Assembly: GCF_035594765.1 (NCBI RefSeq)
Contig: NC_085842.1
Span: 22,544,782 to 22,608,781 of the forward strand
DNA from: Anolis carolinensis
Taxonomy: Eukaryota
Length of the DNA: 64,000 bases
Direction of reading: 5' to 3'
Positions 9,149-61,256 of this stretch are shown piece by piece. Made by a program: the position numbers and the translations under genes. Positions within the stretch are counted from its first letter, which is position 1, and every line of letters begins with the position of its first letter. Under the pieces are notes generated by a model. The model saw only the letters and a program-made list of their open reading frames with translations, was not told the DNA's origin and did not search any database.

Positions 9149-12100
9149 ATGGAGAATCAAACCCAAACGAAGTCTATACTGGCTCGGTCGTCGCCCAGGA
9201 TAAAAAGGACCGCGGTGGATGCTGCTGATTCTGGACATCCATCGACAAGTGGGCTACGGAATCATCAAAACTCAAATGAACAGTCACAGAAGCGGCAGAA
9301 ATACACAATGCCAGAAAACCGCACAATTATGAAATGCTACTACAAATCTGAACCTCAAAGGCGTGGCTACCAAAAAAGGATGCATCAACTGTGGAAACAA
9401 GAGTATCCTGACTCACAGATAACAGAACCCCGACTGGCTGACCAACGAAGATTCATAATCAGAAACAAAGTGTTCAGTGAAGTTGAACTTGAAGAAATCC
9501 AGAAAATTTGCAAAGTAAATTACCATCAGACCACAGCACAGACAGCAGCAGAGACTCCAGCAACACTTGGAATGGTGGAACAGATTGAACCAGAAGAATG
9601 TGTGGAGCTTTTGCAAGAATTTGATGAACCAGCACTTGAAACATCTGCTGAACCACCAGGAACCTTGACAGCAAGACAACAAGAGCTCAAGGATAAGATC
9701 ATGGCTCATGCTGCAGCAAATGCAATAAGACAGCGGCTCCCAACTCTAAAAACAGTGCCCAAGAGACACCTGGCGCCTCTCATGAAAGATGTGAATGCAG
9801 TACTCTCCACTGTCCAAATAACATCAATTGAACAAACAAACCAGTATGCCTATAGTGCAGCAGTGATAGTAACAGAAGAGCTTGGGCTCCTACAACCAAG
9901 GCAGCCCCAAAGAAAATCGACTGGAAAACCAAAGTGGAAGGTCAGGCTGGAGTTGAAAATCAAAAAGCTTAGATCAGATGCAAGTAACCTGAAAAATATG
10001 AAAGAGAAGAAACTGAAGAATGACAAAATCAAGCAATACCTGATCCGAAAGTACTGGCTGAACACCAGAAAAATTGAAGAAGCTTTGGAGATCGTGAAAG
10101 AACAAATTACAGCAACAGCCAGAAAAATTGAAAGGTATGAAGCCAGAATCATCCAGTACAGACAAAATCAACTGTTTCAATCAGACCAAAGACGGTTCTA
10201 CCAGAGTCTGAACCAAACAACAGACACAGTAACCATAAAACCAGAGAAAACTGCAACAACGAAGTTCTGGAAAGAACTTTGGGAAAACAATAAAAACTAC
10301 AACAAAAACGCTGGGTGGATAAAGGAGTTTGAAGGAAAATTCTCACAGAACAAAATGGAACTGATGGAAATAACAACTGAAATGATCAGCAAACGAGTGC
10401 AAAAAGTCAAGAACTGGACATCACCTGGTAGTGATCAACTTCATGGATTTTGGCTCAAACATCTGATTAGTTTACATGGAAAAATGGCCCAACAATTCAA
10501 TGAGATGCTGCAGAAAGGAAGTATCAGTGAATGGCTAACAACTGGAAGAACATACCTGATACAAAAGGATCCAACAAAAGGAGCAGCACCAGGAAACTAC
10601 AGGCCAATAACGTGTCTGCCCACTATGTTTAAACTACTGACTGGCATCATAGCTGACAGAATTCAAGACTATTTTGAAGAAAATAACATCTTGCCAGATG
10701 AACAGAAAGGCAACAAACGGAAAAGCAGGGGCACAAAAGACCAGTTATTGATTGACAAAATGATCCTGGAGAACTGTAAGAGCCGAAAAGCTAATCTTCA
10801 CATGACGTGGATTGACTACAAAAAGGCCTTTGACTCACTCCCACACAGCTGGATCATCAAGTGCCTGGACGCCATCGGGATTTGTAAAAACGTTGGCACC
10901 TTCATTGAAAACATGATGGAGCACTGGAAAACTGAACTGTTTGTTGGAAATGAAAGCTATGGACTTGTCAACATCAGAAGAGGAATTTTCCAGGGAGATT
11001 CATTGTCCCCTCTGCTTTTCATTATTGCCATGATCCCTCTGTCAACAATCTTACAAAAAACAAATCTCGGCTACCAAACATCTAAGAATTCTCACAAAAT
11101 TTCACATTTGATGTACATGGATGACCTGAAGCTATATGGGAAAACAGAAACTGAAATTCAGTCTCTGACCAACACTGTCCGAATTTTTAGCACTGATATC
11201 AACATGGAGTTTGGTTTGGACAAATGTTCGACAGTGGCATTGAAGAAGGGAAAAATCATTGAAAGTGAGGGCATAAATATGCCCAATGGCCAAACAATAA
11301 AGTGTCACCAGCCAGAGGCCTATAAATATCTGGGCATACTACAGCTGGACAACATCAAGCATGAACATGTGAAAACTGTGGTCAGCAAAGAATACACACA
11401 AAGGGTCAGAAAAATTCTCAAAAGCAAGCTCAATGGAGGCAACACCATCAAGGCCATAAACACCTGGGCCATACCTGTCATAAGATATACTGCTGGCATC
11501 ATAAACTGGACACAGATGGAACTGGACAATTTGGACAGAAAAACAAGAAAACTCATGACCATTCATCATTCACTGCACCCTCGCAGTGATGTTGACCGGC
11601 TATATCTGCCTAGAAGATCGGGGGCAGAGGACTCCTACAAGTAAAACAAGCAGTCAAAGAAGAAGAACATGCCCTGGCAGAATATGTAAAGCAAAGTGAA
11701 GAACCTGCTTTGATTGAAGTCAAAAATCAGAAACTCCTCAAAGCACAGCAGACAAAAAACCAGTACAAGAAAACCACACTACAAACTAGAGCTGACAACT
11801 GGCACAACAAAACATTGCATGGAAAGTTCCTTGACAAAATTGAAGGAAAAGCTGATAAGGAGAAGACCTGGCTCTGGCTCACAAATGGGACCCTGAAGAA
11901 GGAGACAGAAGGCCTGATCCTTGCAGCCCAGGAGCAAGCCATCAGGACAAATGCAATTAAGGCCAAGATCGAAAAATCAGCTGATGACCCAAAATGCAGA
12001 CTGTGCAAGGAAACAGATGAAACCATTGATCATATCCTCAGCTGCTGTAAAAAAATTGCACAGACAGACTACAAACAGAGGCACAACTATGTGGCCCAAA

Positions 12101-12561
12101 TGATTCATTGGAACTTATGCCTCAAGTACCACCTGCCAGCAGCAAAGAACTGGTGGGATCACAAACCTGCAAAAGTATTGGAAAATGAGCACGCAAAGAT
12201 ACTGTGGGACTTCCGAATCCAGACTGACAAAGTTCTGGAACACAACACACCAGACATCACAGTTGTGGAAAAGAACAAGGTTTGGATCATTGATGTTGCC
12301 ATCCCAGGTGACAGTCGCATTGACGAAAAACAACAGGAAAAACTCAGCCGCTATCAGGACCTCAAGATTGAACTTCAAAGACTCTGGCAGAAACCAGTGC
12401 AGGTGGTCCCGGTGGTGATGGGCACACTGGGTGCCGTGCCAAAAGATCTCAGCCGGCATTTGGAAACAATAGACATTGACAAAATTACGATCTGCCAACT
12501 GCAAAAAGCCACCCTGCTGGGATCTGCACGCATCATCCGAAAATACATCACACAGTCCTAG
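9149..12561 (+). pseudogene. R4/Dong polyprotein (RT + CCHC + RLE) with a 1-nt frameshift near 11620
   Basis: Motifs QGDSLSPLLF, YMDDL, YLGI, CRLC..E...HILSCC, RHN and PDI...IIDV. This copy reads AGATCGGGGGC where the copy at 60206 reads AGATCAGGGGGC, which is in frame. Confidence 0.9.
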
Positions 12562-33393: not shown

Positions 33394-34218
33394 ATGGCAA
33401 TGGGAAGAGGGGAAACCGCTGCCCTTCAGCCCCGGGGTGCACCAGGGTTGCAGCCGCCTCTGAAAACAGAGGAGCGAGACCCAGCTGGGCATGAACTCCG
33501 GGGCAGAGGGGTGCCTCGTTTGCACCCAGCTGGCTCCATGCGGGAGTTTTTATCCAGGGAATCTCAACGGGTGAAGCAGGAACCAGATGAAGGGCTTCAA
33601 CAGCAGCAGCGGCAACCCCCACCCCTGCCACCATCACAGCAACACAACTGGGAATCTCAAAGACAGGAGTTTTCTAAATCAGTCCAATATCCCCAGTCTG
33701 GATGGAGAAACCCACCAATGTACAAGTCCCTGCCATGGGATACAAATGCCTTTCCGTCTTCCTATGATGCTCCACCCAGTGCAAGCCAGTGGCCTTCTGG
33801 AGGAGGCTGGGTGCCCCAAGACCTCCCGACCCTCAGCCGAGATGCCCAAACCACCTACAGCGGGCAGGAGCAAAGGGAGCGAAGGAATTACGGGACTGCA
33901 AAAGAAGAGGTTCCCAATGAGAATGCAGTCACCTCAGAGATCCGGCGCCAGCGCTTCCGACACCACCGCTACCAGGAGACTGAGGGGCCTCGGGAAGTCT
34001 GCCGGCAGCTCCAAGAACTCTGCCGCCAGTGGCTGCGGCCAGAGCGGCAGAGCAAAGAGCAGATCTTGGAGGTGCTTATTCTGGAGCAGTTCCTGGCCGT
34101 CCTGCCTCTGGAGATTCAGAACTGGGTCAGGGAACACGGGCCGGAGAGCTGTGCCCAAGCGGTAGCCTTGTCGGAAGATTTCCTCATGAGGCAGCGCGAG
34201 GCCCTGAGAAAAGAGCAG
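33394..34218 (+). CDS. Gene C coding exon 1: N-terminal region + SCAN domain (~585 aa over 3 exons)
   Basis: SCAN motif [62 protein letters not shown] start context; donor CAG|GTAGGA after 34218 (phase 0). Confidence 0.9.
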
Positions 34219-34874
34219 GTAGGAAAATACCCTTTTGATCTTTTCTCCAGACTCTGGATTTTTTTTAATGAACCCCTATCAGTTGGCAGGGTGTGTGACT
34301 ACAGTGGACAGATCCTTTTTGCTAGTGGTTTTCTCTTTCAGATATCTTCTTTTGGGGATGGGAATTATACAGAGGTGGGAATCATGCAGCTCATCAAATG
34401 TTGTTCGTCTGTGACACTTAGCATCACTAGTTAATGCAGCTAGTAGTGAGGGATGATATGATTTGTAGTCCAGCAAGATCTTTGGAGAACTGACAGATGT
34501 GTATCTCTCCTTTGAAAAAGATCTTATCATACAGGGCAGGTGGAGTGCAATTACAGCAGGATAACAGGGAATTGTAACACACATTCTTTCCCTGTCTGTT
34601 CTCCTGAAAACTGTTTCTTTTACAAAAGAAGTGGTTTGAGAAACTGCAAATCGCTTCTGGTGTGAGAAAATTGGCCATCTGCAAGGATGTTGTCTAGGGG
34701 ATGCCCAGATGTTTTTGATGTTTTACCATCCTGTGGGAGGCTTCTCTCATGCCCCTGCATGGAGCTGGAACTGATAGAGGGAGCTCATCCATACTCTCCC
34801 CAGATTCAAACGGGCAACCTTCAGGTCAGTAACCTAGCCCTGAAGTCAGCAGTCCTACTGGCACAAGGGTTTTG

Positions 34875-35168
34875 CCCATTGCACTACCAGGGGCTCCACA
34901 AAAAGAATGGCATTACACTATGTAGCACAATTTTTGTTCCTGGGTTATAAATGTCATTTCCTAATTGGTTCGCCCATTGCACTACCAGGGACTCCACAAA
35001 AATAATGGCATTACACTATGTAGCACAATTTTTGTTCCTGGGTTATTAATGTCATTTCCTAATTGGTTCTCCCATTGCGCTACCAGGGGCTCCACAAAAA
35101 GAATGGCATTACACTATGTAGAACAATTTTTGTTCTTGGGTTATTAATGTCATTTCCTAATTGGTTCT
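34875..35168 (+). repeat. Three tandem copies of a 98-bp unit
   Basis: CCCATTGC..TACCAGGG..CACAAAAA..GGCATTACACTATGTAG... begins at 34875, 34973 and 35071. Confidence 0.9.
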
Positions 35169-36334
35169 ATCATAAATACATAGGAAAACTTTGTTTTTGA
35201 GGTCTGCACAAAAAGGTTAAAAATGGCACATTGGAAGGTTAAAAATGGCAGCCACAAAAATGTTTCTGGGGTATAAGTACCACACAATTAAACAGGAAAT
35301 AAGACTTTCAAACCAGGAACAGGAGCCCCCGGTGGCACTTTGGATTAAATCCTTGTGCCTGCAGGACTGCTGATCTAAAGGTTGCTGGTTCGAATCCGGG
35401 GAGAGCATGGATGAGCTGTATACAACACAGTATCTCAAGCCGCTCCTGACACGAAAAAACAAACAAAACAAAACCAGGAACAGAAAATGTTTCAAATTGT
35501 GTTACATAGTGTTCATTGTGTTTGTAAAATAAACATTTCCAGGCTGAGGATGCCTACCATAGATGTGGGCGAAACGTCAGGAGAGAATACTTCTAGAACA
35601 TGGCCATACAGCCATGAAACATACAACAACCCTGTTTCCAGGCTGTTTCCCACTAGTAGAGTGTTGAGAGAGGAGCAATGTCATGTAATGCATACCAACC
35701 AGACTATGTTGTCCTGTTATAATTGCAATTTGTCTACCTTGTGAGACAAAGTGTTGGGTGGAAAGAAAGCAAGTGCCAGGCATGTTTCTCTCTAAGGGCA
35801 TTCAATGGAGAGGATTCTACTATGAAACAGGTCTTGTCTGTTCCCACCATTCATTTAAACAATTGGAAATTGTGTTTCCCACCTTATTATTTTATTAATC
35901 TTGCTGGTGTTTACACTTCTTGTTTCTCTGCTGCTGGAAAAGGGACTAGAGACATGTCCAGCAACCTGGGATTTCTCCTCAAGGAGCCCCATCAGGAGAA
36001 AGGAAATCATGAGAGGGGGTGAGGACTCCACTTACCCAACGCCCCAGCAAAAAGCAGGAATCCCTGATTCTTCTGCGGTTACTATATACCTAGCCAATGT
36101 GAAATGTGCTCCTTTCCTTGGGATGCCTTGATTATATTTCTGTCTTCTGTTATTGCAGTGCTCCAAATGTGGTAATGAAATGAAACTGATGGCACATGCA
36201 ATAACAAAAGCCACATCTCTAACAGGGGGTTTGGGGAAATTGAAAAGATTGTGGGCCACAAGAAAGGAATCGAGGCCCCATATGTCCCAGGACCTAACGT
36301 GGAGTTAGTTCTGTGTACATTTCCGGGCACCATA

Positions 36335-36726
36335 GTTTGGAAATATATTGACAAGCTAGAACGTATCCAGAGGAGAGCAACCAATATAATTAAAGGTTTG
36401 CCCTATGAGGAGTGATTTAGGGAGTTGGATATGCTTAGCTTGGAGAAGAGAAGGTAAAATGGCCATGATAAATATTTGAAGAGATGACACATTGAAGAGG
36501 GAGCCAACTTATTTAAGACTAGGTTGCAGAGCAGTAGATTCAGGCTATAGGACAAGAAATTCCACTTAAATGTTAGGGAGAATTTCCTGAAGGTAAAAGC
36601 TGTTTGACATGGAATATATTGCCTCTGAGGGTAGTGAAGTTTTGTCAGGAGTGCTTGAATTATGTATTTATGACTGTGGACCGAATGGCCTTTGAGGACT
36701 CTTCCAACTCTAGGATTGTATGATTC
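36335..36726 (+). mobile_element. CR1 LINE 3' fragment (others at ~6020-6290, 23710-24040, 27850-28060, 53185-53330, 54160-54430 and 57060-57300)
   Basis: Decayed KLERIQRRAT...GLFSLEKRR-like coding sequence and TTCCAACTCTAGGATT(G/C)TATGATTC tail. Confidence 0.75.
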
Positions 36727-36729
36727 CAG

Positions 36730-36991
36730 GCGCTGTGGACGTTTGATGAGGTAGTGGCGAATGCACCCTTGGTTCAGCAAATGCCGTTTCCAGGTGTGAC
36801 GCAGCAGGTCCATTACCCCACTTTGGGGTTGCCGATGCAGTACCCATCCATGACCCAGCAGACCCTGTATCCTGCTATTGGCCAGCAAGCCCCAAACCCC
36901 ATCATGTCGGAGAGGATGCCATTGCATGCTGGGGGAACACTACTCTGTCGGGAACCTGTGCCGGAGGGTGGAAAGAACCTCAGGCCATATG
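36730..36991 (+). CDS. Gene C exon 2: KRAB-A-like exon expanded by a Q/P-rich insert
   Basis: TTCCAG|GCG acceptor and TATG|GTAAGT donor, phase 0 to 1, open frame. Begins ALWTFDEVVAN and ends LLCREPVPEGGKNLRPYG. Confidence 0.75.
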
Positions 36992-38233
36992 GTAAGTTAT
37001 CTTGCCAGTGCTGACTTTTGAACATTTTGGGGGAAGCTAATAGCAAAACTTGAGAAATTCCTTTTGAAAAAGACTATTAGAATTACAAGTGATAGCCAGC
37101 ATGGTATACTGGTTTGAGGATCAGACCATGACTCTGGAGACCAGGTTTCAAATCATTGTAGAAGGAATGACACCATGTAACCGCAGTGGCTCCATGCTAT
37201 GTAATCCTGGGAGTTGTACTTTTTCAAGTGGTTTCTGCCCAAGTGCTGGTGCCTTGCCAAATGCCATATCCCAGGATTCCATACTATAGTGTAAATGCAC
37301 CCTTTGGTTCTACTTTGGCTGCCATTGCTACATTCCATGGGATCCTGAGGTTTGTACTTGATGAAAATCTGATTTTAGGAAGAAATACTGGAGAATTCCT
37401 AGTATCTGAGCCTAAATTACAAATCCCAGGATTTCATACAATGGAATTATGACTGATGGAGGATAATCATTGTGCTATAGTGTAGAAGGGCTCTAGATGT
37501 TTTGGACAACTGTGCCATATCCCGTTACCGTTGATCAAACTGATTGGAGTTTATCAAAGCTGAAATTGAAAACATTTGAGGTCTCTGTTGGTTTTCAGTG
37601 TCTTTAAGAGTTAGATCTGTCTACATTTGAACATGAAAGAGTCACATTGTATTTACTGGGAGCATAAGGTGCCCTTCTGGAGCCAGCAAGGTGTAGTAGT
37701 TTGAAGGTTGGAGAAAAGGTGCAACCTTTTTATTCATGCTGTCTTTTAAAGAAGGTTTTTAAGATCATGTTAGAGGCTGCTGTAGTTTTATATGTTTTTA
37801 TGGATTCAATCTGAATTGTTTTAATGCTAATGATGTTTAATACTGTTTTAATATTTGTATATCATATATTTTAAAATGTATGCCGATGTTTTTATGTTAA
37901 GTCGCTTTGAGTCTCCTGTGGGAGAGATAAAGTGGGGTATAAATGAATATAGTGGGGAGGTTAAACTGCTGAGCTGCTGAACTTGCTGATCGAAAGGTCC
38001 GTGGTTTGAATCTGGGGAGTGGGGTGAGCTCCCGCTGTAACGCTTAGCTTTTGCCAACCTTGCACTTTGAAAACATGCACATGTGAGTAGATCAATAGGT
38101 ACCACTTCTGTGGGAAGGTAACGGTGCTCCATGCAGTCATGCCGGCCACATGGCCTTGGAGATGTCTACGAACAATGCCGGCTCTTCGGCTTAAAAATGG
38201 AGATGAGTACCAACCCTCAGAGTCGGAAACGAC

Positions 38234-38277
<44 letters not shown>

Positions 38278-38674
38278 TAATAGCCTTCTCTGCCAAAGTG
38301 CCTCACTAAAGTACAACTCTCAGGATTCCATAGCATTGAGTATGGAAATTAAAGTGGTGTCAGATAGTGTAGTGTACAATTGATATGTACCCAATGAGTC
38401 TGGAGACCATGGTATAAATCTCTGCCCAGCCATGAACCCTGCTAGATGACCTCGGGCAAGTCACACTCTGTCAGCCTCAGAGGAAGACAGTGGCAAGCCT
38501 CTTCTGAATAAATCTTGCCTGTGACAGAATTGCCGTGAGTTAGAAACTACTTGAAAATGCCCAGCAACAAGTTGGCCACTCTGTGACTTACACGGTTGTA
38601 AAACTGTGCCACAAACATGAAGCTGAATGCGTGTATCTTTTTCACCCTTCCTTCCCCTAACCCTCTGCACGCAG

Positions 38675-39345
38675 GGCCTATCCAGGAGTTCCGGAGGCCC
38701 CTGACGAATGCCGAGCGGATGCGCAACCGACGGATGCGCAACCGGAAGCAGCGTCTGGAGACCAGCATGCAGCTCGTGGAATCAGCCTCTCGGGCGCCCT
38801 CGATGCTTCTGGACGCCATGCGCGGGCTGCACCACCAGGACCTGAAAGCCTTCGACCGGGCCAGGCAGGAGGAATGGCAGCACCGCAAGCAGGAAAGGTG
38901 CCAAGACCGAGCCACATCCCAGTTAATGGTCAGTGCTCTTGAGCGCTCCCACAGCGACCTGGGGCAGTTCTTGGGGAGGCAAACTGTGACCATGGCAGCC
39001 ATTGCAGCAGTTTTTGCCGGCCGGAGGTCTCCCTCGCATGGAACTCATCGTGGACATGGTGCTCACCTGGACCACAATAATCCGCCAGAATCCAGAACTC
39101 CACTACAACCTGGCCATGTGCCTGGTATGCCTTCAGAGCCCACGTCTGGACCCGTAATCCCGTGTCCGGTGCCTCCCTTGGCCACACCTGGTGGCGTTTG
39201 CGACCCCATTCCTGAACCATCTCCAACAGACAGCCCTCAGGAGGATGCAGCTCCCGACTCCCCAACACCATCCACTTCAGATGCCACCTCACGGACACTT
39301 GACACAAGACTGAACAGAGGGACAAAAAGGAAGATGTGGGAATAG
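38675..39345 (+). CDS. Gene C last exon: basic helix + predicted coiled coil + Pro-rich tail, no zinc fingers
   Basis: Pyrimidine-rich acceptor ...CTGCACGCAG|GG (phase 1), 671-nt open frame, CpG-rich; AATAAA at 39912. Confidence 0.75.
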
Positions 39346-42300
39346 TATGATTGTCATTCCTTGGAGTTTTAGTCACATGTTGACATAGCTTCCACCACAG
39401 ACAGGGTCAACAGGATGGTATTCTGCCCTTGTCCTATTTTTCAAATGTATCCTGCTATTATCCCATTTCAACTACCATACCTTTTCAACTATCATCTTTA
39501 GGCATCTGTAAAATGGGAATAATCAGCCTGCCTTGCAAGGTGGTTGTGAGTGTGCAACTGTGTAGCCATTTCATTCTACTTTCTAAGTCTTTGAAGGGGG
39601 GTGGGGAAGGGGGAAATTTTCCAGAACATTATTTATTTCTGGAAAATTATTTCTTTTTTGTGATCCTTCTCAGAATCTGGCCTATAGGGGATTTTGTTAA
39701 GGACTGATGAAGAAACCAAATTTTCCATGCCCTGCAAAAGCAACACTACACTACATCTCAGGGCCCACGTTGGCCCTACAATTGTTTTTTTCTTTCTATT
39801 TTATTTATTATATTTGTTATAAAAGTCTGTAACATACTTGTTATACTCAGGTTGACAAGCAACAGCGAATACCCCCCTGACTGCAGTTAATATACAGTAA
39901 AATGACAGCTCAATAAAAGGTGAGATGATAAAACTACCTGTTTTGAGATTTAAAAACAAAGCTGGAGAATGAAAAACATACAGTTGTCACTCCATATTTG
40001 TGGGTTTTACATCTGTGGATTTGATGAAAATGTTCTCTATAGAAATCTATAGCTCATCCAGTGTGATGCTACAGTTGTTATGCTGAAAGTTCTAATGATT
40101 CCTAAGTAGAATATCTTTCTAGTAATCTCAGGGTCCCCCAGTGCGATTCTTTGGACAATTTGTGGTAGTTTTTAACATTAGCAATTTTTCCACTTTTGTA
40201 GTGGGTCCTTCATCCCTATCCCTAGCAAACGTGAAGGTCTGACTGCATTGTTTTTATGCTGTTGGAGCTAGCCCATAAGGAAAGTTGCTATTAAATGATC
40301 ACTATTATGCCCTTTTTGCCGGAAACAAATCTGTTCCAAACCCTAATATTTTTTTAAAAGATGAAGCAAGATGGCACTCCCATCAATCCCATATAGCTAC
40401 TGGACTTGCATTTTGCATGAAACATCATTCAACGTAATGGATGCAATTTGCTTCTAGATCTTATAGCTGCAAATACATTACAACCCCTGTATCCCCATGT
40501 CTGACAAATTGTGTCCTCTCTAGCTATTTTCTAAATCCTCCAGCACAACTGTGGTATTCTAGAAATTCTAGAAATTCTTTGGGGTTGTTTAGTGTTTTCT
40601 GGGAAGTATGGCCGTGTACCAGAAGTACTCTCTCCTGGCGTTTCACCCAAATCTATGGCAGGCATCCTCAGAGGTTGTGAGGTGTATATATTACTATCAG
40701 AGGTTGTACACACTAATGCCCAGTTACTACAGCCAGCATAGCCAAGGGCTGGTGTGATGGGGTTTTGCAGTCCTAAAGATCTCAAGGTGTTCGGGGGACC
40801 TGCTGCCGTTCCTCCAGGATATTTGCTGCCTGCTCCCTTATGGCAGGCATGAGCAAACCTTGGCCCTCCAGGTCTTTTGGACTTCAATTCCCGCAATTCC
40901 TAACAGCCAACAGGCTGTTCAAGTCCAAAACACCTGGAGGGCTGAAGTTTGCCCATGCCTGCCTTATGGCCTATGGACGAGTGTCTCCAAGTCTTTGTCT
41001 CTCCAGATGTTCTGAACTTCGGATCCCAGAATCGTTGGCCATTGACCATGGTGCTTATATTTTTGGATGCTGAAGGCCAAAAAACACCTGGAAGGCCATC
41101 AATTGAGGACCATTGTAACCCTAGCATTTTTGGGCTTCATCTCCTCTTCTCGGAACTGCAATCTCCATTAGCCCAGTGCTGGAGGTTGTAGTTCCAACAT
41201 CAGGAGAGCTAAACAATTCCCACCCTCTTTTGCAAATTCTTCTCTTAGAACCAAGCAGTTGATAACCTTCCCATTGCAGGTTTGAAAACCAAATTGATGA
41301 AAGGAGAAAAAAATCAAGTTTGTGGAAAACAAACAAAAGTGTTAACAAAACAAAAAATAAACAATTCTGGGATCAGAATTGTAAAATGATGTATCTAGTT
41401 CTCTTGTCATAAATCTCAAGGGAACTCAGTCATGAAACCCACTGGTTGACTTTGAGGAAGTCACACTCTCCACCTCAGAGGAAGACAAAAGCAAAGCTCT
41501 CCTGAGCAAAATTTACGAAAAAAACAACCCATGTGACAGGTTTGCCAAAGGATCACCATAGATCAGAAACTACCTGAAGGCGCACAATGACAACAAGATG
41601 CAGGTTGCTAGAAATAAACTTATTTATAATCCAATTCTAAAATTGGAACATGCTGCATGTACACAAAGAACAACAAAAATGAAGAAATCGGGACAAGGAA
41701 ATATTAGTGCTTTGTTATTATAATGTTGCTGAGTTTACCTCATTCAGTGTTACTTCTCCTTTTTTCGAAAAAGAAAAAAACGCCCTCACACTTCGTCTAC
41801 TATTGCAAAATACTGTAAGGCCGTGGCCGCTTGTGGCCAGGCATTCCCTTTTGACAGGGCAAATTTTTGCCACAATTTCTGTGTGGGAGGTCATGTTTCT
41901 ACCAATAGATCCCCACACTGGAGATTAGAGAACTACAACTTCTTTTGCAATCCACCATTCCTTACTGGTCGTTTTCTGTGATCCCCAACAAGGGGAAAGG
42001 CTGTGCACAAAAGCAATGTCAACAAAACAATAGCCTGATTTTTACTGTGTGAAACATGACAAGGATCGGGTCTTTTGTCAGCAAAACTAAAAAAAAGTAA
42101 AAAAAAAACCAGTTAGCCCTCCATATGTGCTGGGTTTAGGAGCTCAAGAGCCTCATGAAAATGAAAAACTGTAAATTACCCCTTTTTACCATAGAACACT
42201 TCTCTAGGAATTTCTAGGTCTTCCAGGATTAACCTATGTCCAACTTCTGCTGGAAGCTGAACAGAGCATTACATTGAGAACCTAGAGATTCCTAGTGAGA

Positions 42301-47501: not shown

Positions 47502-48187
47502 TTACATCTGAACTATTGGGGAGCTTTCTCTTACATTTCCCCCACCTGGATGGTTTCCATCTGGGTGTTCAGGAAAAGACGAACTGTCGTAGAGGCTTTC
47601 CCCACTGTCAAAATACTTGTAGGCGTTGTCCCCCAAGTGGGTCCTCTGATGTTTAGTCAGGTAGGGTCTCCACCGGAAGCTCTCCCCACATTGCAGGCAC
47701 TTGTAGGGCTTCTCCCCCGTGTGGATTCTCAGGTGTTCGGTAAGGGTGGAGCGGCGGTTGAAGCTCCGTCCACACTTGGGGCACTCGTAGGGCTTCTCCC
47801 CTGTATGGATGCGGAGATGCGCATTGAGGTGGGTGCTCTGGAAGAACCGCTTGCCACATGCCAGGCACTCAAAAGGCTTCTCCCCCGTGTGGGTCCGGTG
47901 ATGCTTCACCAGTTCAAACTTGTACTGGAAGGCTTTGCCACACTCATGGCACACGTGTTTCTTTTCAACCTGCACAATCTTAAGCTGGCTGACATCGGTC
48001 ACATCATTTCCTTCAGGGAGAGCTGCTGCTTCAGTCTTTATTGGTTTCTCAAGTGGGTGAGTCTCCAAGTCTTGCTTGACAACTTGCGTCTCAGCGTTAA
48101 GCATCACCCTGTCGTGCTGCATCACCAACTCGGAGGCTGCGTGATGAGAATTTGTCTCTGCAGTACCATTCCTTACAGGGTCACTAT
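47502..48187 (-). CDS. Gene D zinc-finger exon II (paralogous duplicate, 4 C2H2 fingers + degenerate fifth)
   Basis: TCTTCCCTTCAG|AT phase-1 acceptor; fingers 2-4 nearly identical to exon I; no separate KRAB or SCAN exon seen between the two. Confidence 0.85.
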
Positions 48188-48478
48188 CTGAAGGGAAGAT
48201 AAAAGCAAGAGAAAATACGATGCAATAAGTCCAGAAAAGACTCAATTTTAGACACCAGCATTTTCTGATTTGATTATTTGAGTTCATTAATAGTTTCTCT
48301 CGAGGAATTTCTAAGGGCACATCTACACTGCAGAATTAATGCAGTTTGACATCACTTTTATTGGGTTAATTGTGTTATGGCTTTGTGATTGATATTTGAT
48401 TGTTGTATCGGGCAAGGCCCCATGTGAGCCCCCCCGAGTCCCTTCAGGGAGATGGGGCGGGGTATAAAAATAAAGTTG

Positions 48479-52460: not shown

Positions 52461-53158
52461 TTATAGTGAACCTGTGAGTACTTCCTGCTGCTCGCCTGGC
52501 GATGAGCTCTCAGTCATAGCTTCTCCATTCTCAAGGCCTTTGTAGGTAGGGTTTCCAACCAAGTGGATTCTCTGGTGTTTGGTCAAATAGGGTCTCCACC
52601 GGAAGCTCTCCCCACACTGGAGGCACTTGTATGGTTTCTCCCCCGTGTGGATCCTCAAATGTTCGGTAAGAGTGGAGCGGCGATTGAAGCTCCGTCCACA
52701 TTTGGGACATTCGTAAGGCTTCTCCCCTGTATGAATCCTCCGATGGGCACTCAAGTGGGAGCTCTGGATGAAGCGTTTCCCACACGCCAGGCACTCGTAG
52801 GGCTTCTCTCCCGTGTGAGTCCGCCAGTGCAGCAAAAACTCAGATTTGCAGTGGAACCACCGGTCACACTCAGGACACATCAGCTTCTTCCGGCCCACGT
52901 GGAACATGCTGCGCTTCGAATTGGCTGCTCTCAAGTGCCTGGGCGGTTCGCGCCACATATGCCCCGGTTGGGGATCCCATTGCCTTTGTAGACCGCGTCG
53001 CATCTCAGCGTTTAAAGGCACGGTCCCCGGGGGGGCCGCCAGCAAAGTCCAACGGGGTTCTGCTTGCCCTGAAATGTCAGTCTCAGGGATCTCCTCTTTG
53101 ATCTCCCTCACAATCACTTCGCTTGCTGGAATGGAGGGAATCAAGGAGAGCTCATTCC
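52461..53158 (-). CDS. Gene D zinc-finger exon I (4 C2H2 fingers + degenerate fifth)
   Basis: TTTCTCTTCCAG|GG phase-1 acceptor; 4 C2H2 fingers; in frame with KRAB-B. Confidence 0.9.
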
Positions 53159-54074
53159 CTGGAAGAGAAAGGATGGAGAAGGATATGAATCGTAGATTTG
53201 GAAAGACACCAAGGGCCATCCAGGCCTACCCCATTTTGCCATGCAGGAAGACACAATCCAAGCACTCTTAACAGATGATGGCCATCCAGCCTCTGCTTAA
53301 AAATCCCCAGAAAAGGAGACTTCATCACCCTCTGCACTGCCATATAATCCAGATGATCAAAGCAGGAGGTTGATACGAATTCAGTTTTTTTTCAGGTCAG
53401 GAGTGACTTGAGAAACTGCAAGTCGCTTATTGTGTGAGAGAATTGGCCTTCTGCAAGGACATTGCCCAGATGTTTTTACCATCCTGTGCGTGGCTTCTCT
53501 CATGTCCCCACATGAGAAGCTGGAGCTGACAAATGAGAGCTCATTTATTTATTTATTTACAGTATTTATATTCCGCCCTTCTCACCCCGAAGGGGACTCA
53601 GGGCGGATCACATTACACATATAAGGCAAACATTCAATGCCTAAACATAGAACAAAGACAAACGCAGGCTCCGAGCTGGCCTTGAACTCATGACCTCTTG
53701 GTTAGAGTGATTTGTTGCAGCTGGCTGCAGCTGGCTGCTTACCAGCCTGCGCCACAGCCCGGGCCCTGGATTCGAACCTCTAACCTTTCAGGCAGCAGTC
53801 CTGCTGGCACAAGGGTTCAACCCATTGCGCCACAAGGGACTCCATCAAAGCATATAACCCACATTATCTGCTTTGAACTGGAATATATGAGTCTACACTG
53901 TCATATATAAAACATATAAAAATTTGTTTTAAAGTTTTTATGTTGTAATTAATAGTTTTAATTGATTTTATGTACTGTGTAATTTTGATCTTGTGTAGGC
54001 ATCGAATTACTGCCATTGTTGTAAGCTGCCCTGAGTCCATTCGGGTGAGAAGGGCGGGATATAAATGTTGGAAA

Positions 54075-59721: not shown

Positions 59722-61256
59722 AAATCTCACAAAATTTCGCATCTGATGTACATGGATGACCTGAAGCTGTATGGGAAAACGGAAACTGAAATCCAGTCTC
59801 TGACTAACACTGTCCGAAGTTTTAGCACTGATATCAGCATGGGAAAAATCATTGAAAGTGAGAGCATAAATATGCCTAATGGCCAAACGATAAAGTGTCA
59901 CCAACCAGAGGCCTATAAATATCTGGGCATATTACAGCTGGACAACATCAAGCATGAACATGTGAAAACTGGTCAGCAAAGAATACACACAAAGGGTCAG
60001 AAAAATTCTCAAAAGCAAGCCCAATGGAGGCAACACCATCAAGGCCATAAACACCTGGGCCATACCTGTCATAAGATATACTGCTGGCATCATACACTGG
60101 ACACAGATGGAACTGGACAATTTGGACAGAAAACCAAGAAAACTCATGACCATTCATCATTCACTGCACCCTCGCAGTGATGTTGACCGGCTCTATCTGC
60201 CTAGAAGATCAGGGGGCAGAGGACTCTTACAAGTAAAACAAGCAGTCAAAGAAGAAGAACATGCCCTGGCAGAATATGTAAAGCAAAGTGAAGAACCTGC
60301 TTTGATTGAAGTCAAAAATCAGAAACTCCTCAAAGCACAGCAGACAAAAAACCAGTACAAGAAAACCGCACTACAAACTAGAGCCAACAGCTGGCACGAC
60401 AAAACATTGCATGGAAAGTTCCTTGACAAAATTGAAGGAAAAGCTGATAAGGAGAAGACCTGGCTCTGGCTCACAAATGGGACCCTGAAGAAGGAGACAG
60501 AAGGCCTGATCCTTGCAGCCCAGGAGCAAGCCATCAGAGCAAAAGCAATTAAGGCCAAGATCGAAAAATCAGCTGATGACCCAAAATGCAGACTGTGCAA
60601 GGAAGCTGACGAAACCATTGATCATATCCTCAGCTGCTGTAAGAAAATCGCACAGACTACAAACAGAGGCACAACTGTGTGGCCCAAATGATTCATTGGA
60701 ACTTATGCCTCAAGTACCACCTCCCAGCAGCAAAGAACTGGTGGGATCACAAACCTGCAAAAGTATTGGAAAATGAGCACGCAAAGATACTGTGGGACGT
60801 CCGAATCCAGACTGACAAATTTCTGGAACACAACACACCAGACATCACAGTTGTGGAAAAGAAAAGGGTTTGGATCATTGAGGTTGCCATCCCAGGTGAC
60901 AGCTGTATTGACGAAAAACAACAGGAAAAACTCAGCCGCTATCAGGACCTCAGGATCGAACTTCAAAGACTCTGGCAGAAACCAGTAAAGGTGGTCCCGG
61001 TGGTGATCGGCACATTGGGTGCCGTGCCAAAAGATCTCAGCCAGCATTTGGAAACAATAGACATTGACAAAATTACAATTTGTCAACTGCAAAAGGCCAC
61101 CCTACTGGGATCTGCATGCATCATCCGAAAATACATCACACAGTCCTAGACACTTGGGAAGTCTTCGACTTGTGATTTTGTGATACGAAATTCAGCATAT
61201 CTTTCTAGTTTGCTGTCATACTATGTCGTTCTGTCAATAATAATAATAATAATAAT
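59722..61256 (+). mobile_element. 5'-truncated R4/Dong copy with indels
   Basis: Matches 11087-12650 from just upstream of YMDD to the 3' UTR; (TAA)n tail; small deletions break the ORF. Confidence 0.92.

Follow-up and report, generated by a model that had tools for sequence, protein, structure and literature searches.

A squamate SCAN gene without zinc fingers, whose last exon, encoding a predicted long helix, is shared with Myb/SANT-like proteins

Gene C, a three-exon gene at 33394–39345 (+) of the window analysed here, a 64,000-nucleotide stretch of the Anolis carolinensis genome without a single run of N, is functional, present as a single copy, and ancient, dating to crown Squamata. It joins a SCAN domain to a C-terminal exon that recurs in two groups of squamate Myb/SANT-like paralogues. 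On balance, our analysis favours gene C being a SCAND1-like adaptor or modulator, finger-less and supplemented by a putative partner-binding helix.

The three exons, all on the forward strand, measure 825, 262 and 671 nt (1758 nt), and encode 585 aa and a stop. Coding exon 1 (33394–34218) runs for 275 codons from an ATG to a phase-0 end at the GT donor at 34219, and specifies ∼180 aa of predicted disorder followed by the SCAN domain. Intron 1 (34219–36729, GT..AG) holds a 98-bp tandem repeat in three copies and SINE-like fragments, and was found, at variable length, in all five of the orthologous loci mapped. Coding exon 2 (36730–36991) follows an AG acceptor and, with 262 nt (87 codons plus 1 nt), moves the frame from phase 0 to phase 1; a (TAA)n run and a SINE-like element lie within the phase-1 intron 2 (36992–38674, GTAAGT..AG). 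Coding exon 3 (38675–39345; 671 nt), also preceded by an AG acceptor, encodes the tail module and ends with the TAG stop at 39343–39345. The first polyadenylation-signal hexamer past the stop (39912–39917, +), recognized by sequence pattern only, is a candidate 3′ end. All four splice sites are canonical and the reading frames are intact.

A sequence-only reading of this DNA had proposed three phase-compatible exons encoding 585 aa, and this model is borne out by the sequence, the translations, the orthologues and the junctions of an orthologous transcript. The latter, L001, is an uninterrupted 2.6-kb contig from another squamate, whose alignment to the window is interrupted precisely at the predicted junctions (34218 | 36727–36992 | 38674); splicing of the gene C exons is thus supported by the mRNA of an orthologue, the RNA being that of a different squamate. 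Five other genomes conserve the exon 1 start (MA.GRGETA) and its phase-0 GT donor, and the three-exon structure with its phases is identical in five genomes. The same reading had noted 0/1 intron phases common to gene C and genes A and B; as to the first intron, the SCAN exons of A and B do likewise finish in phase 0 with a GT donor next to them. Because every exon matches predicted proteins of > 20 squamates, and the orthologous transcript is spliced alike, the structure of gene C is, as judged from these comparisons, far beyond chance. In this work the exons of gene C were analysed one by one, and database orthologues were used for full-length analyses.

At least 24 genera of squamates, ranging from geckos through to snakes, have a predicted orthologue of 543–598 aa. 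All three exons are matched in each of these proteins and the stop of exon 3 is conserved in all. Orthologues in which PF02023 is the sole Pfam domain occur in geckos, a skink, a lacertid, a cordylid, an anguid, an amphisbaenian, iguanians and snakes. The dN/dS ratios (NG86) were 0.15 for the N-terminus, 0.075 for SCAN, 0.20 for exon 2, 0.044 for the tail helix and 0.135 for the distal tail. The orthologue search and dN/dS analysis across squamates that the earlier reading had proposed as a check therefore returned a widely held gene under purifying selection; tblastn found no paralogous copies of exons 2 and 3 in the window. We conclude, from sequence comparison, that gene C is a real gene of reptiles, retained by every lizard and snake examined.

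The SCAN domain (aa 181–269; 33934–34200, +) matches PF02023 with an E-value of 1.2e-38 and scores 131.2 bits on exon 1, compared with a Pfam gathering cut-off of 27, which places the protein in the SCAN family; it is 85–89% identical to that of the lizard orthologues. Exon 2 encodes a Gln/Pro-rich linker built of about four 9-aa units with a conserved QYP in common. It is 44–75% identical to the orthologous exons and is predicted to be disordered in a structure model of an orthologue. A Pfam search with this exon and 21 orthologous exons, at E-values up to 10, revealed no known domain and only scattered chance matches. The nine residues with which exon 2 opens may resemble the beginning of a KRAB-A box; no KRAB-A boxes with which to compare them emerged when the window and loci were scanned by regex, and no KRAB domain was detected by Pfam in any exon at E-values up to 1 or in the 21 exon 2 orthologues at E-values up to 10.

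Zinc fingers are likewise absent. A regex scan of the whole window in six frames found no C2H2 finger on the forward strand, all four finger arrays in the window lying on the reverse strand. Gene C therefore falls outside the SCAN-ZNF class and, with orthologues that carry only PF02023, is the genuine finger-less SCAN gene that had been claimed. PF13837 was not found by Pfam in any of the three exons, so that the protein is not of the Myb_DNA-bind_4 or MSANTD type either, and tblastn of three Myb-containing paralogues (P0003, P0005 and P0006) against the window matched only SCAN and tail sequences, with no Myb remnant in introns or flanks. The orthologues are named in RefSeq as ‘zinc finger protein with KRAB and SCAN domains 1-like’, ‘protein enabled homolog’ or ‘mitogen-activated protein kinase 7-like’. 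Since these proteins have neither fingers nor KRAB, the names are misleading; the ‘ZKSCAN1-like’ label in particular implies a SCAN-KRAB-ZNF protein, and the KRAB part of that description is missing. Databases already contain the gene as a prediction, misnamed, and it is seemingly unstudied.

The most constrained part of the protein lies in exon 3. It opens with an arginine-rich basic motif (exon 3 aa 6–26; 38692–38754, +) that includes a 15-nt internal direct repeat, at 38711–38744, encoding RMRNR twice; R6, R16, R19, R21 and R26 are invariant in all three paralogue groups described below (alignment A1). The motif leads into a predicted α helix (aa 11–114; 38707–39018, +) in which a charged middle separates two amphipathic segments. 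The sequence-only reading had asked for a structure prediction of its charged amphipathic helix, and AlphaFold2 returned one long helix spanning residues 11–114 (pLDDT 94–97) with disorder beyond, the identical helix being present in the model of a full-length orthologue. The distal tail (39019–39342, +) is Pro-rich, predicted disordered, and carries a basic KRK at 39325–39333 followed by W-E; this C-terminal K/R motif is kept in all paralogue groups, with R218 invariant and K219 at least 90% conserved. All the peptide features quoted earlier for this exon were recovered: the basic RMRNR-RMRNR run, a charged helix, a Pro-rich stretch beyond it and, near the terminus, KRK. Occupancy of heptad a/d positions is 0.5–0.62 for residues 13–60, 0.62–0.75 for residues 81–116 and 0.25–0.38 in the charged middle, suggesting only a moderate heptad signal, and conservation across paralogues had no significant helical-face periodicity (424 of 2000 shuffles reached the observed power). 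The ∼88 near-invariant residues across the order exceed what a simple dimerising coiled coil needs, and this near-invariance points to binding of a more demanding partner or of nucleic acid. These observations count against the adaptor reading favoured here, as do the Trp and Cys that the window copy has at two tail positions.

Two groups of squamate paralogues end in an exon homologous to exon 3, one group with the order SCAN, Myb_DNA-bind_4 and tail, the other with Myb_DNA-bind_4 and tail (phmmer E-values of 4.5e-21 to 5e-09 against P0003–P0006). When the paralogues are aligned with gene C, their tail-exon acceptors coincide with its own to within one residue and share its phase 1. The proposal that exon 3 resembles the C-terminal exon of Myb/SANT-like (PF13837) proteins of reptiles was therefore confirmed. 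Tail homologues with both SCAN and PF13837 include P0003 (Heteronotia) and P0047 (Hemicordylus); those with PF13837 only include P0005 (snakes), P0050 (Gekko) and P0051 (Anolis sagrei). We define here a ‘Myb-tail’ module family as a C-terminal exon with phase-1 entry that encodes a basic motif, a long helix and a terminal K/R motif, and gene C exon 3 belongs to it.

In a tree of the tails, the three groups form separate clades, each with geckos and non-geckos, and the clade nearest to gene C is that of the SCAN+Myb+tail genes. Like gene C, these genes have three coding exons (SCAN in phase 0, a middle exon, and a tail entered in phase 1) with tails 41–47% identical to that of gene C, and in Hemicordylus the gene lies on the same chromosome as the gene C orthologue; their middle exon, however, encodes a PF13837 Myb/SANT-like domain, whereas that of gene C encodes the unrelated QYP-repeat linker. 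The Myb+tail genes have a tail exon 34–41% identical to that of gene C, whose split codon occupies the corresponding place in the alignment, but possess the Myb domain and lack SCAN. They are more conserved overall than gene C (91% identity between snake and gecko).

How might such a protein act? Its predicted layout is a disordered N-terminus, SCAN, a disordered QYP linker, an Arg-headed helix of ∼104 residues, a disordered Pro-rich tail and a terminal KRK. As a phase-1 module the helix exon is portable, and in the two paralogue groups it follows a Myb_DNA-bind_4 (trihelix-type Myb/SANT-like) domain. By analogy with SCAND1, the SCAN domain of gene C would heterodimerise with SCAN-ZNF proteins, while the tail helix would bind whatever it binds in the Myb-tail proteins, be it each other or a common conserved partner. 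Since fingers and a Myb domain are both missing from gene C, the outcome would most likely be that of an adaptor or modulator without DNA binding, with adaptor or dominant-negative action, and we consider the adaptor or decoy idea of the sequence-only reading plausible. SCAND1 is the precedent for finger-less SCAN modulators (PMC6627353). This mammalian SCAN-only protein resembles gene C in having SCAN without any DNA-binding domain, but is a short protein lacking a second conserved module, whereas gene C has 585 aa, a conserved 104-residue helix and the QYP-repeat linker; our searches gave no evidence of orthology between the two and found gene C only in squamates.

Two sets of genes offer further comparisons. 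ZSCAN20 and ZSCAN29 are mammalian SCAN, Myb/SANT-like and C2H2 proteins, and so, like gene C, join SCAN to a module from the Myb/SANT-like family; they retain Myb and fingers, whereas gene C retains neither and has only the non-Myb tail. SCAND3/ZBED9 and PGBD1 are fusions of SCAN to transposase-derived domains, and are precedents for the capture of transposon-derived or transposon-associated exons by SCAN exons. Their captured domains are recognisably transposase, in contrast to the helix of gene C, for which we could demonstrate no transposon homology. More tentatively, and against what we regard as the better odds, the tail helix might be a previously undescribed module, restricted to squamates within our searches and the most constrained part of three ancient paralogues, that physically couples the rapidly expanding, Gypsy-derived SCAN-ZNF network to the putatively Harbinger-derived DNA-binding family of Myb/SANT-like proteins, gene C being the dedicated bridge and itself devoid of a DNA-binding domain.

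The basic region leading into an amphipathic helix has a bZIP-like layout, and the tail could instead bind nucleic acid itself, making gene C a DNA- or RNA-binding factor and no decoy. The invariance of the basic motif in all three paralogue groups, the helix with heptad-like hydrophobic spacing that starts directly after it, and the dN/dS of 0.044, which would suit a nucleic-acid or multi-partner interface, all speak for this. Nevertheless, exon 3 and 28 tails searched against Pfam at E-values up to 10 gave scattered chance matches and neither bZIP nor any other family; a sequence profile search of the PDB with alignment A1 gave no match at E-values up to 10, and Foldseek of the tail model against the PDB gave a single meaningless match (E 8.7). 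The spacing from basic motif to first heptad is also unlike what we take to be the canonical bZIP layout. Moreover, the paralogues already have a dedicated Myb DNA-binding domain ahead of the module, so that there is less need for another. We consider a nucleic-acid-binding tail unlikely.

More doubtful still is the proposal that the finger exon of a SCAN-ZNF gene was exchanged for the tail exon of a Harbinger-derived Myb-like gene, with the tail keeping its binding to transposase or HARBI1. Its phase-1 acceptor would be compatible if the acceptors of finger exons are in phase 1, gene C lies within a SCAN-ZNF cluster, and PF13837-type vertebrate Myb genes (MSANTD1/2 and, putatively, ZSCAN20) are reported to be Harbinger-derived (PMC9392472). 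The published Harbinger homology of MSANTD proteins, however, concerns the Myb-like domain only (PMC9392472). The sequence-only reading had taken it as established that the Harbinger Myb-like C-terminus binds the transposase; a secondary source says no more than that the interaction goes through an N-terminal end, which appears to be that of the transposase. With exon 3 as query, phmmer searched 1.84 billion representatives exhaustively and found no relatives outside Squamata, the six real matches being all squamate, and the suggested similarity of the tail to the PIF/Harbinger Myb-like C-terminus was therefore not upheld. Searches with P0005, tail only and full length, also returned squamates only, within the limits of their 5-mer prefilter. 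MSANTD1–4 and NAIF1, themselves derived from the Harbinger Myb-like protein (PMC9392472), are the family context of the domain that accompanies the tail in the paralogues, but are defined by the trihelix Myb-like domain that gene C lacks, and the exhaustive search detected no similarity between them and the tail. Because the homology is confined to that domain, and the tail has no outside match, the tie of gene C to PIF/Harbinger seems to be by association only.

The trees also bear on this exchange. The nearest tail relative of gene C already has SCAN plus Myb, and the SCAN tree places gene C, weakly, with the SCAN+Myb+tail genes (support 82/63, with only two SCAN-ZNF comparators). On the sequences compared, replacement of the middle (Myb) exon thus explains gene C as well as replacement of a finger exon would, and the two appear equally possible.

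That the window copy is decaying, or the model an artefact of annotation joining unrelated ORFs, is very improbable: the copy does have, among lizards, the longest terminal branch of the tail tree (a partial Phrynocephalus paralogue model and a Logan contig left aside), bears Trp and Cys at two tail positions where all other orthologues have Arg, and has no identical protein returned from the databases, but its frames and splice sites are intact, its junctions agree with L001, and its pairwise dN/dS against other species is 0.03–0.07 for the helix and 0.05–0.14 for SCAN.

The SCAN-ZNF genes of lizards are a lineage-specific expansion, for none of which a survey found a mammalian orthologue (PMC3971581). 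Within such an expanding cluster, gene C is a finger-less SCAN gene that is single-copy and under strong purifying selection across a whole order, and what it conserves best is a helix that lacks annotation and is common to Myb/SANT-like proteins. On the practical side, its orthologues have to be sought behind RefSeq names that mislead. If the helix mediates pairing of these proteins, gene C would be a fixed hub in a fluid transcription-factor family, and a clear case of exons shuffled between two gene families, each of them with roots in mobile elements.

Gene C, the finger-less SCAN gene, is encoded on the forward strand by three exon segments that stay open and carry canonical splice signals, as the sequence-only reading had drawn them. 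Exon 1 (33394–34218) runs from an ATG through 275 codons to a GT donor at 34219, exon 2 (36730–36991, 262 nt) lies between an AG acceptor and a GTAAGT donor, and exon 3 (38675–39345), which encodes the tail, follows an AG acceptor and closes with a stop codon at 39343–39345. The arithmetic of that reading is also correct, with 1758 nt for 585 aa and a stop and with introns in phases 0 and 1, and all the peptide features that it quoted were found in the exon translations. The window exons were searched one by one, and full-length analyses used database orthologues. A complete SCAN domain closes exon 1 (PF02023, E 1.2e-38); no Pfam family was matched by exon 2 or exon 3. The phase of the first intron is shared with the neighbouring SCAN-ZNF genes A and B, whose SCAN exons, too, terminate in phase 0 before a GT donor. 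In a six-frame pattern scan of the window, C2H2 fingers were present on the minus strand only, in agreement with the description of gene C as finger-less; there is therefore no finger exon after gene C in the 24.6 kb of window downstream. The window is free of N runs. Intron 1 contains a 98-bp unit repeated three times (34875–35168; 95% matches), and both introns carry tRNA-like SINE fragments (38234–38282, 35320–35410 and 37950–38230), with a (TAA)n run after one of them; no tRNA gene was called at these fragments by ARAGORN.

The scan detected four C2H2 arrays, namely those of genes A and B and two four-finger exons on the minus strand (47502–48320 and 52461–53219), about 5 kb apart. We regard the latter as tandem duplicates because they are 76% identical over 130 aa; the window yielded no SCAN exon for them, and a regular-expression scan no KRAB-A box. 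On the plus strand, an ORF for a LINE-type reverse transcriptase (831 aa, RVT_1) and, after it, a zf-RVT ORF occupy 9149–12561, between genes A and B, and a second zf-RVT fragment is close to the right end of the window (60107–60691).

An exhaustive phmmer search of 1.84 billion representatives with exon 3 gave six real matches. The best was a snake protein of 573 aa (P0001) that spans all three exons, and a word-indexed search from it, together with cluster look-up, provided the orthologue list. The orthologues, of 543–598 aa and with SCAN as their sole Pfam domain, come from snakes (colubrids, elapids, Crotalus and Candoia), non-gecko lizards (a lacertid, a cordylid, an anguid, a skink, an amphisbaenian, phrynosomatids and Pogona) and five gecko genera; every one listed aligns to all three window exons. 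In Sceloporus, Elgaria, Hemicordylus, Gekko and Ahaetulla the three coding exons, the phases and the GT/AG sites are as in gene C, with introns of 0.4–5.5 kb. A Logan transcript contig of 2606 nt (L001, run SRR12656981) carries an orthologue as a single unbroken 589-aa ORF; when the contig is aligned to the window, the breaks fall at 34218, 36727–36992 and 38674, the predicted junctions. The splicing is thus seen in the transcript of a related species; the source is not the window's own species, and its closest neighbour in the tail tree is the skink.

Selection was estimated exon by exon in seven species by the Nei–Gojobori method. The dN/dS ratio was 0.15 for the N-terminus, 0.075 for the SCAN domain, 0.20 for exon 2, 0.044 for the first 115 residues of exon 3 and 0.135 for the distal tail, values that are approximate because synonymous divergence is about 1, near saturation. 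The orthologue and dN/dS checks come out in favour of gene C, with orthologues across squamates and ratios of 0.044–0.20 by region, and what the gene is can be regarded as near-certain. The leading ∼88 residues of exon 3 hardly vary over the span from geckos to snakes. In one Rhineura protein (P0046, isoform X2) the tail match is confined to the first 88 residues and the sequence then diverges, a pattern suggestive of alternative splicing, or of another 3′ end, within exon 3 in some species.

The window copy has peculiarities of its own. At codons 67 and 75 of exon 3 (around 38875–38877 and 38899–38901) the Arg found in all other orthologues is replaced by Trp and Cys, in each case by a C-to-T type of change at CpG. 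The distal tail is without the PPWGPPE stretch present in most orthologues, and no other identified full-length gene C orthologue of a lizard sits on so long a terminal branch in the tail tree. A 15-nt direct repeat in exon 3 (38711–38744) encodes a doubled RMRNR, and this doubling, being common to all squamate orthologues, is ancient.

The remaining phmmer matches of exon 3 were proteins in which a Myb_DNA-bind_4 domain (PF13837, E ∼1e-18) precedes a homologous tail. One group has SCAN, Myb and tail (P0003, gecko; P0047, cordylid), and P0006, P0049, P0048 and P0004 are apparently incomplete models of this gene. The other has Myb and tail without SCAN (P0005, snakes; P0050, Gekko; P0051, Anolis sagrei; also L004/L010), with 91–94% identity across snake, gecko and anole. 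This second gene is far more strongly conserved than gene C, and is annotated only as ‘uncharacterized’, apart from one isoform named MSANTD5; in Ahaetulla another PF13837 gene lies immediately upstream of it. When P0003 and P0005 were mapped on their loci, the tail proved to be a separate last exon with a phase-1 split codon, at the position aligned with that of gene C in P0005 and at most one residue off in P0003; P0003 also has the overall three-exon layout of gene C. The likeness of exon 3 to the C-termini of reptile Myb/SANT-like proteins, proposed in the sequence-only reading, is therefore true homology, given the phmmer matches, the shared exon boundary and phase, and the tree. In a maximum-likelihood tree built from the helix region there were three separate clades, each with geckos and non-gecko squamates, so that all three tail genes predate the squamate crown. 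In Hemicordylus and Ahaetulla the paralogues lie on one chromosome, a few Mb apart.

Calling exon 3 ‘transposon-like’ goes further than this homology allows. MSANTD1–4 and NAIF1 are reported to derive from Harbinger Myb-like genes, with ZSCAN20 named as a further candidate, and the reported similarity is limited to the Myb-like domain, of 115–167 aa (Etchegaray et al., 2022; PMC9392472). Gene C is without this domain, and no tail relatives beyond squamates were detected by the exhaustive phmmer search or by searches with the Myb-tail protein P0005; the label therefore reflects association and is not evidence. A secondary text, moreover, places the interaction between Harbinger's Myb-like protein and the transposase at an N-terminal end, not at the Myb-like C-terminus. 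Both PMC3971581 and PMC3406341 cite a Gypsy origin for SCAN.

Two one-step routes to the gene C architecture fit the data. A SCAN+Myb+tail gene may have exchanged its Myb exon for the QYP-repeat exon (exon 2); the tail tree, in which the Myb+tail clade is more distant from both gene C and the SCAN+Myb+tail clade than these two are from each other, leans to this route, as does the SCAN tree, at weak support (82/63) and with two SCAN-ZNF comparators only. The route favoured by the sequence-only reading, exchange of the finger exon of a SCAN-ZNF gene for the tail exon, also fits the data.

Exon 2 contains some four 9-residue units in tandem that share a conserved Gln-Tyr-Pro core; the units are well kept across squamates and matched no known family in Pfam. 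Its first nine residues loosely resemble what we take to be the start of a KRAB-A box. For the tail, AlphaFold2 with a 28-sequence alignment predicted a single long helix (residues 11–114, pLDDT 94–97) with the rest disordered, and a heptad scan gave two amphipathic stretches (approximately residues 13–60 and 81–116) flanking a charged Glu/Arg/Gln-rich middle. In the full-length model of the Sceloporus orthologue only SCAN and the tail helix, kinked at its single proline, are ordered; the N-terminus, exon 2 and distal tail are disordered. Among the sites conserved across paralogues are the basic-motif arginines and a scatter of hydrophobic positions, with no significant helical-face periodicity. 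Comparison of the tail with the PDB, by sequence and by fold, gave no match.

Finger-less SCAN proteins are already a known kind, and so are fusions of SCAN with other captured modules. RefSeq and UniProt already contain predictions of the orthologues, misleadingly named, and our literature search found neither the gene C architecture nor the tail module described. The basic motif and the terminal KRK could plausibly be nuclear-localisation signals or make nucleic-acid contacts. The main rival reading, that the basic-helix tail itself binds DNA or RNA, we consider unlikely. The best-supported reading, which we favour somewhat over its negation, is that the gene C product is an adaptor or modulator without a DNA-binding domain. 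It would then resemble mammalian SCAND1, a finger-less SCAN protein for which pairing with SCAN-ZNF proteins has been shown (PMC6627353). How it would work is more tentative, at slightly less than even odds: the gene C SCAN may pair with SCAN-ZNF proteins, while the tail helix may provide a second, independent binding module common to the Myb-tail proteins.
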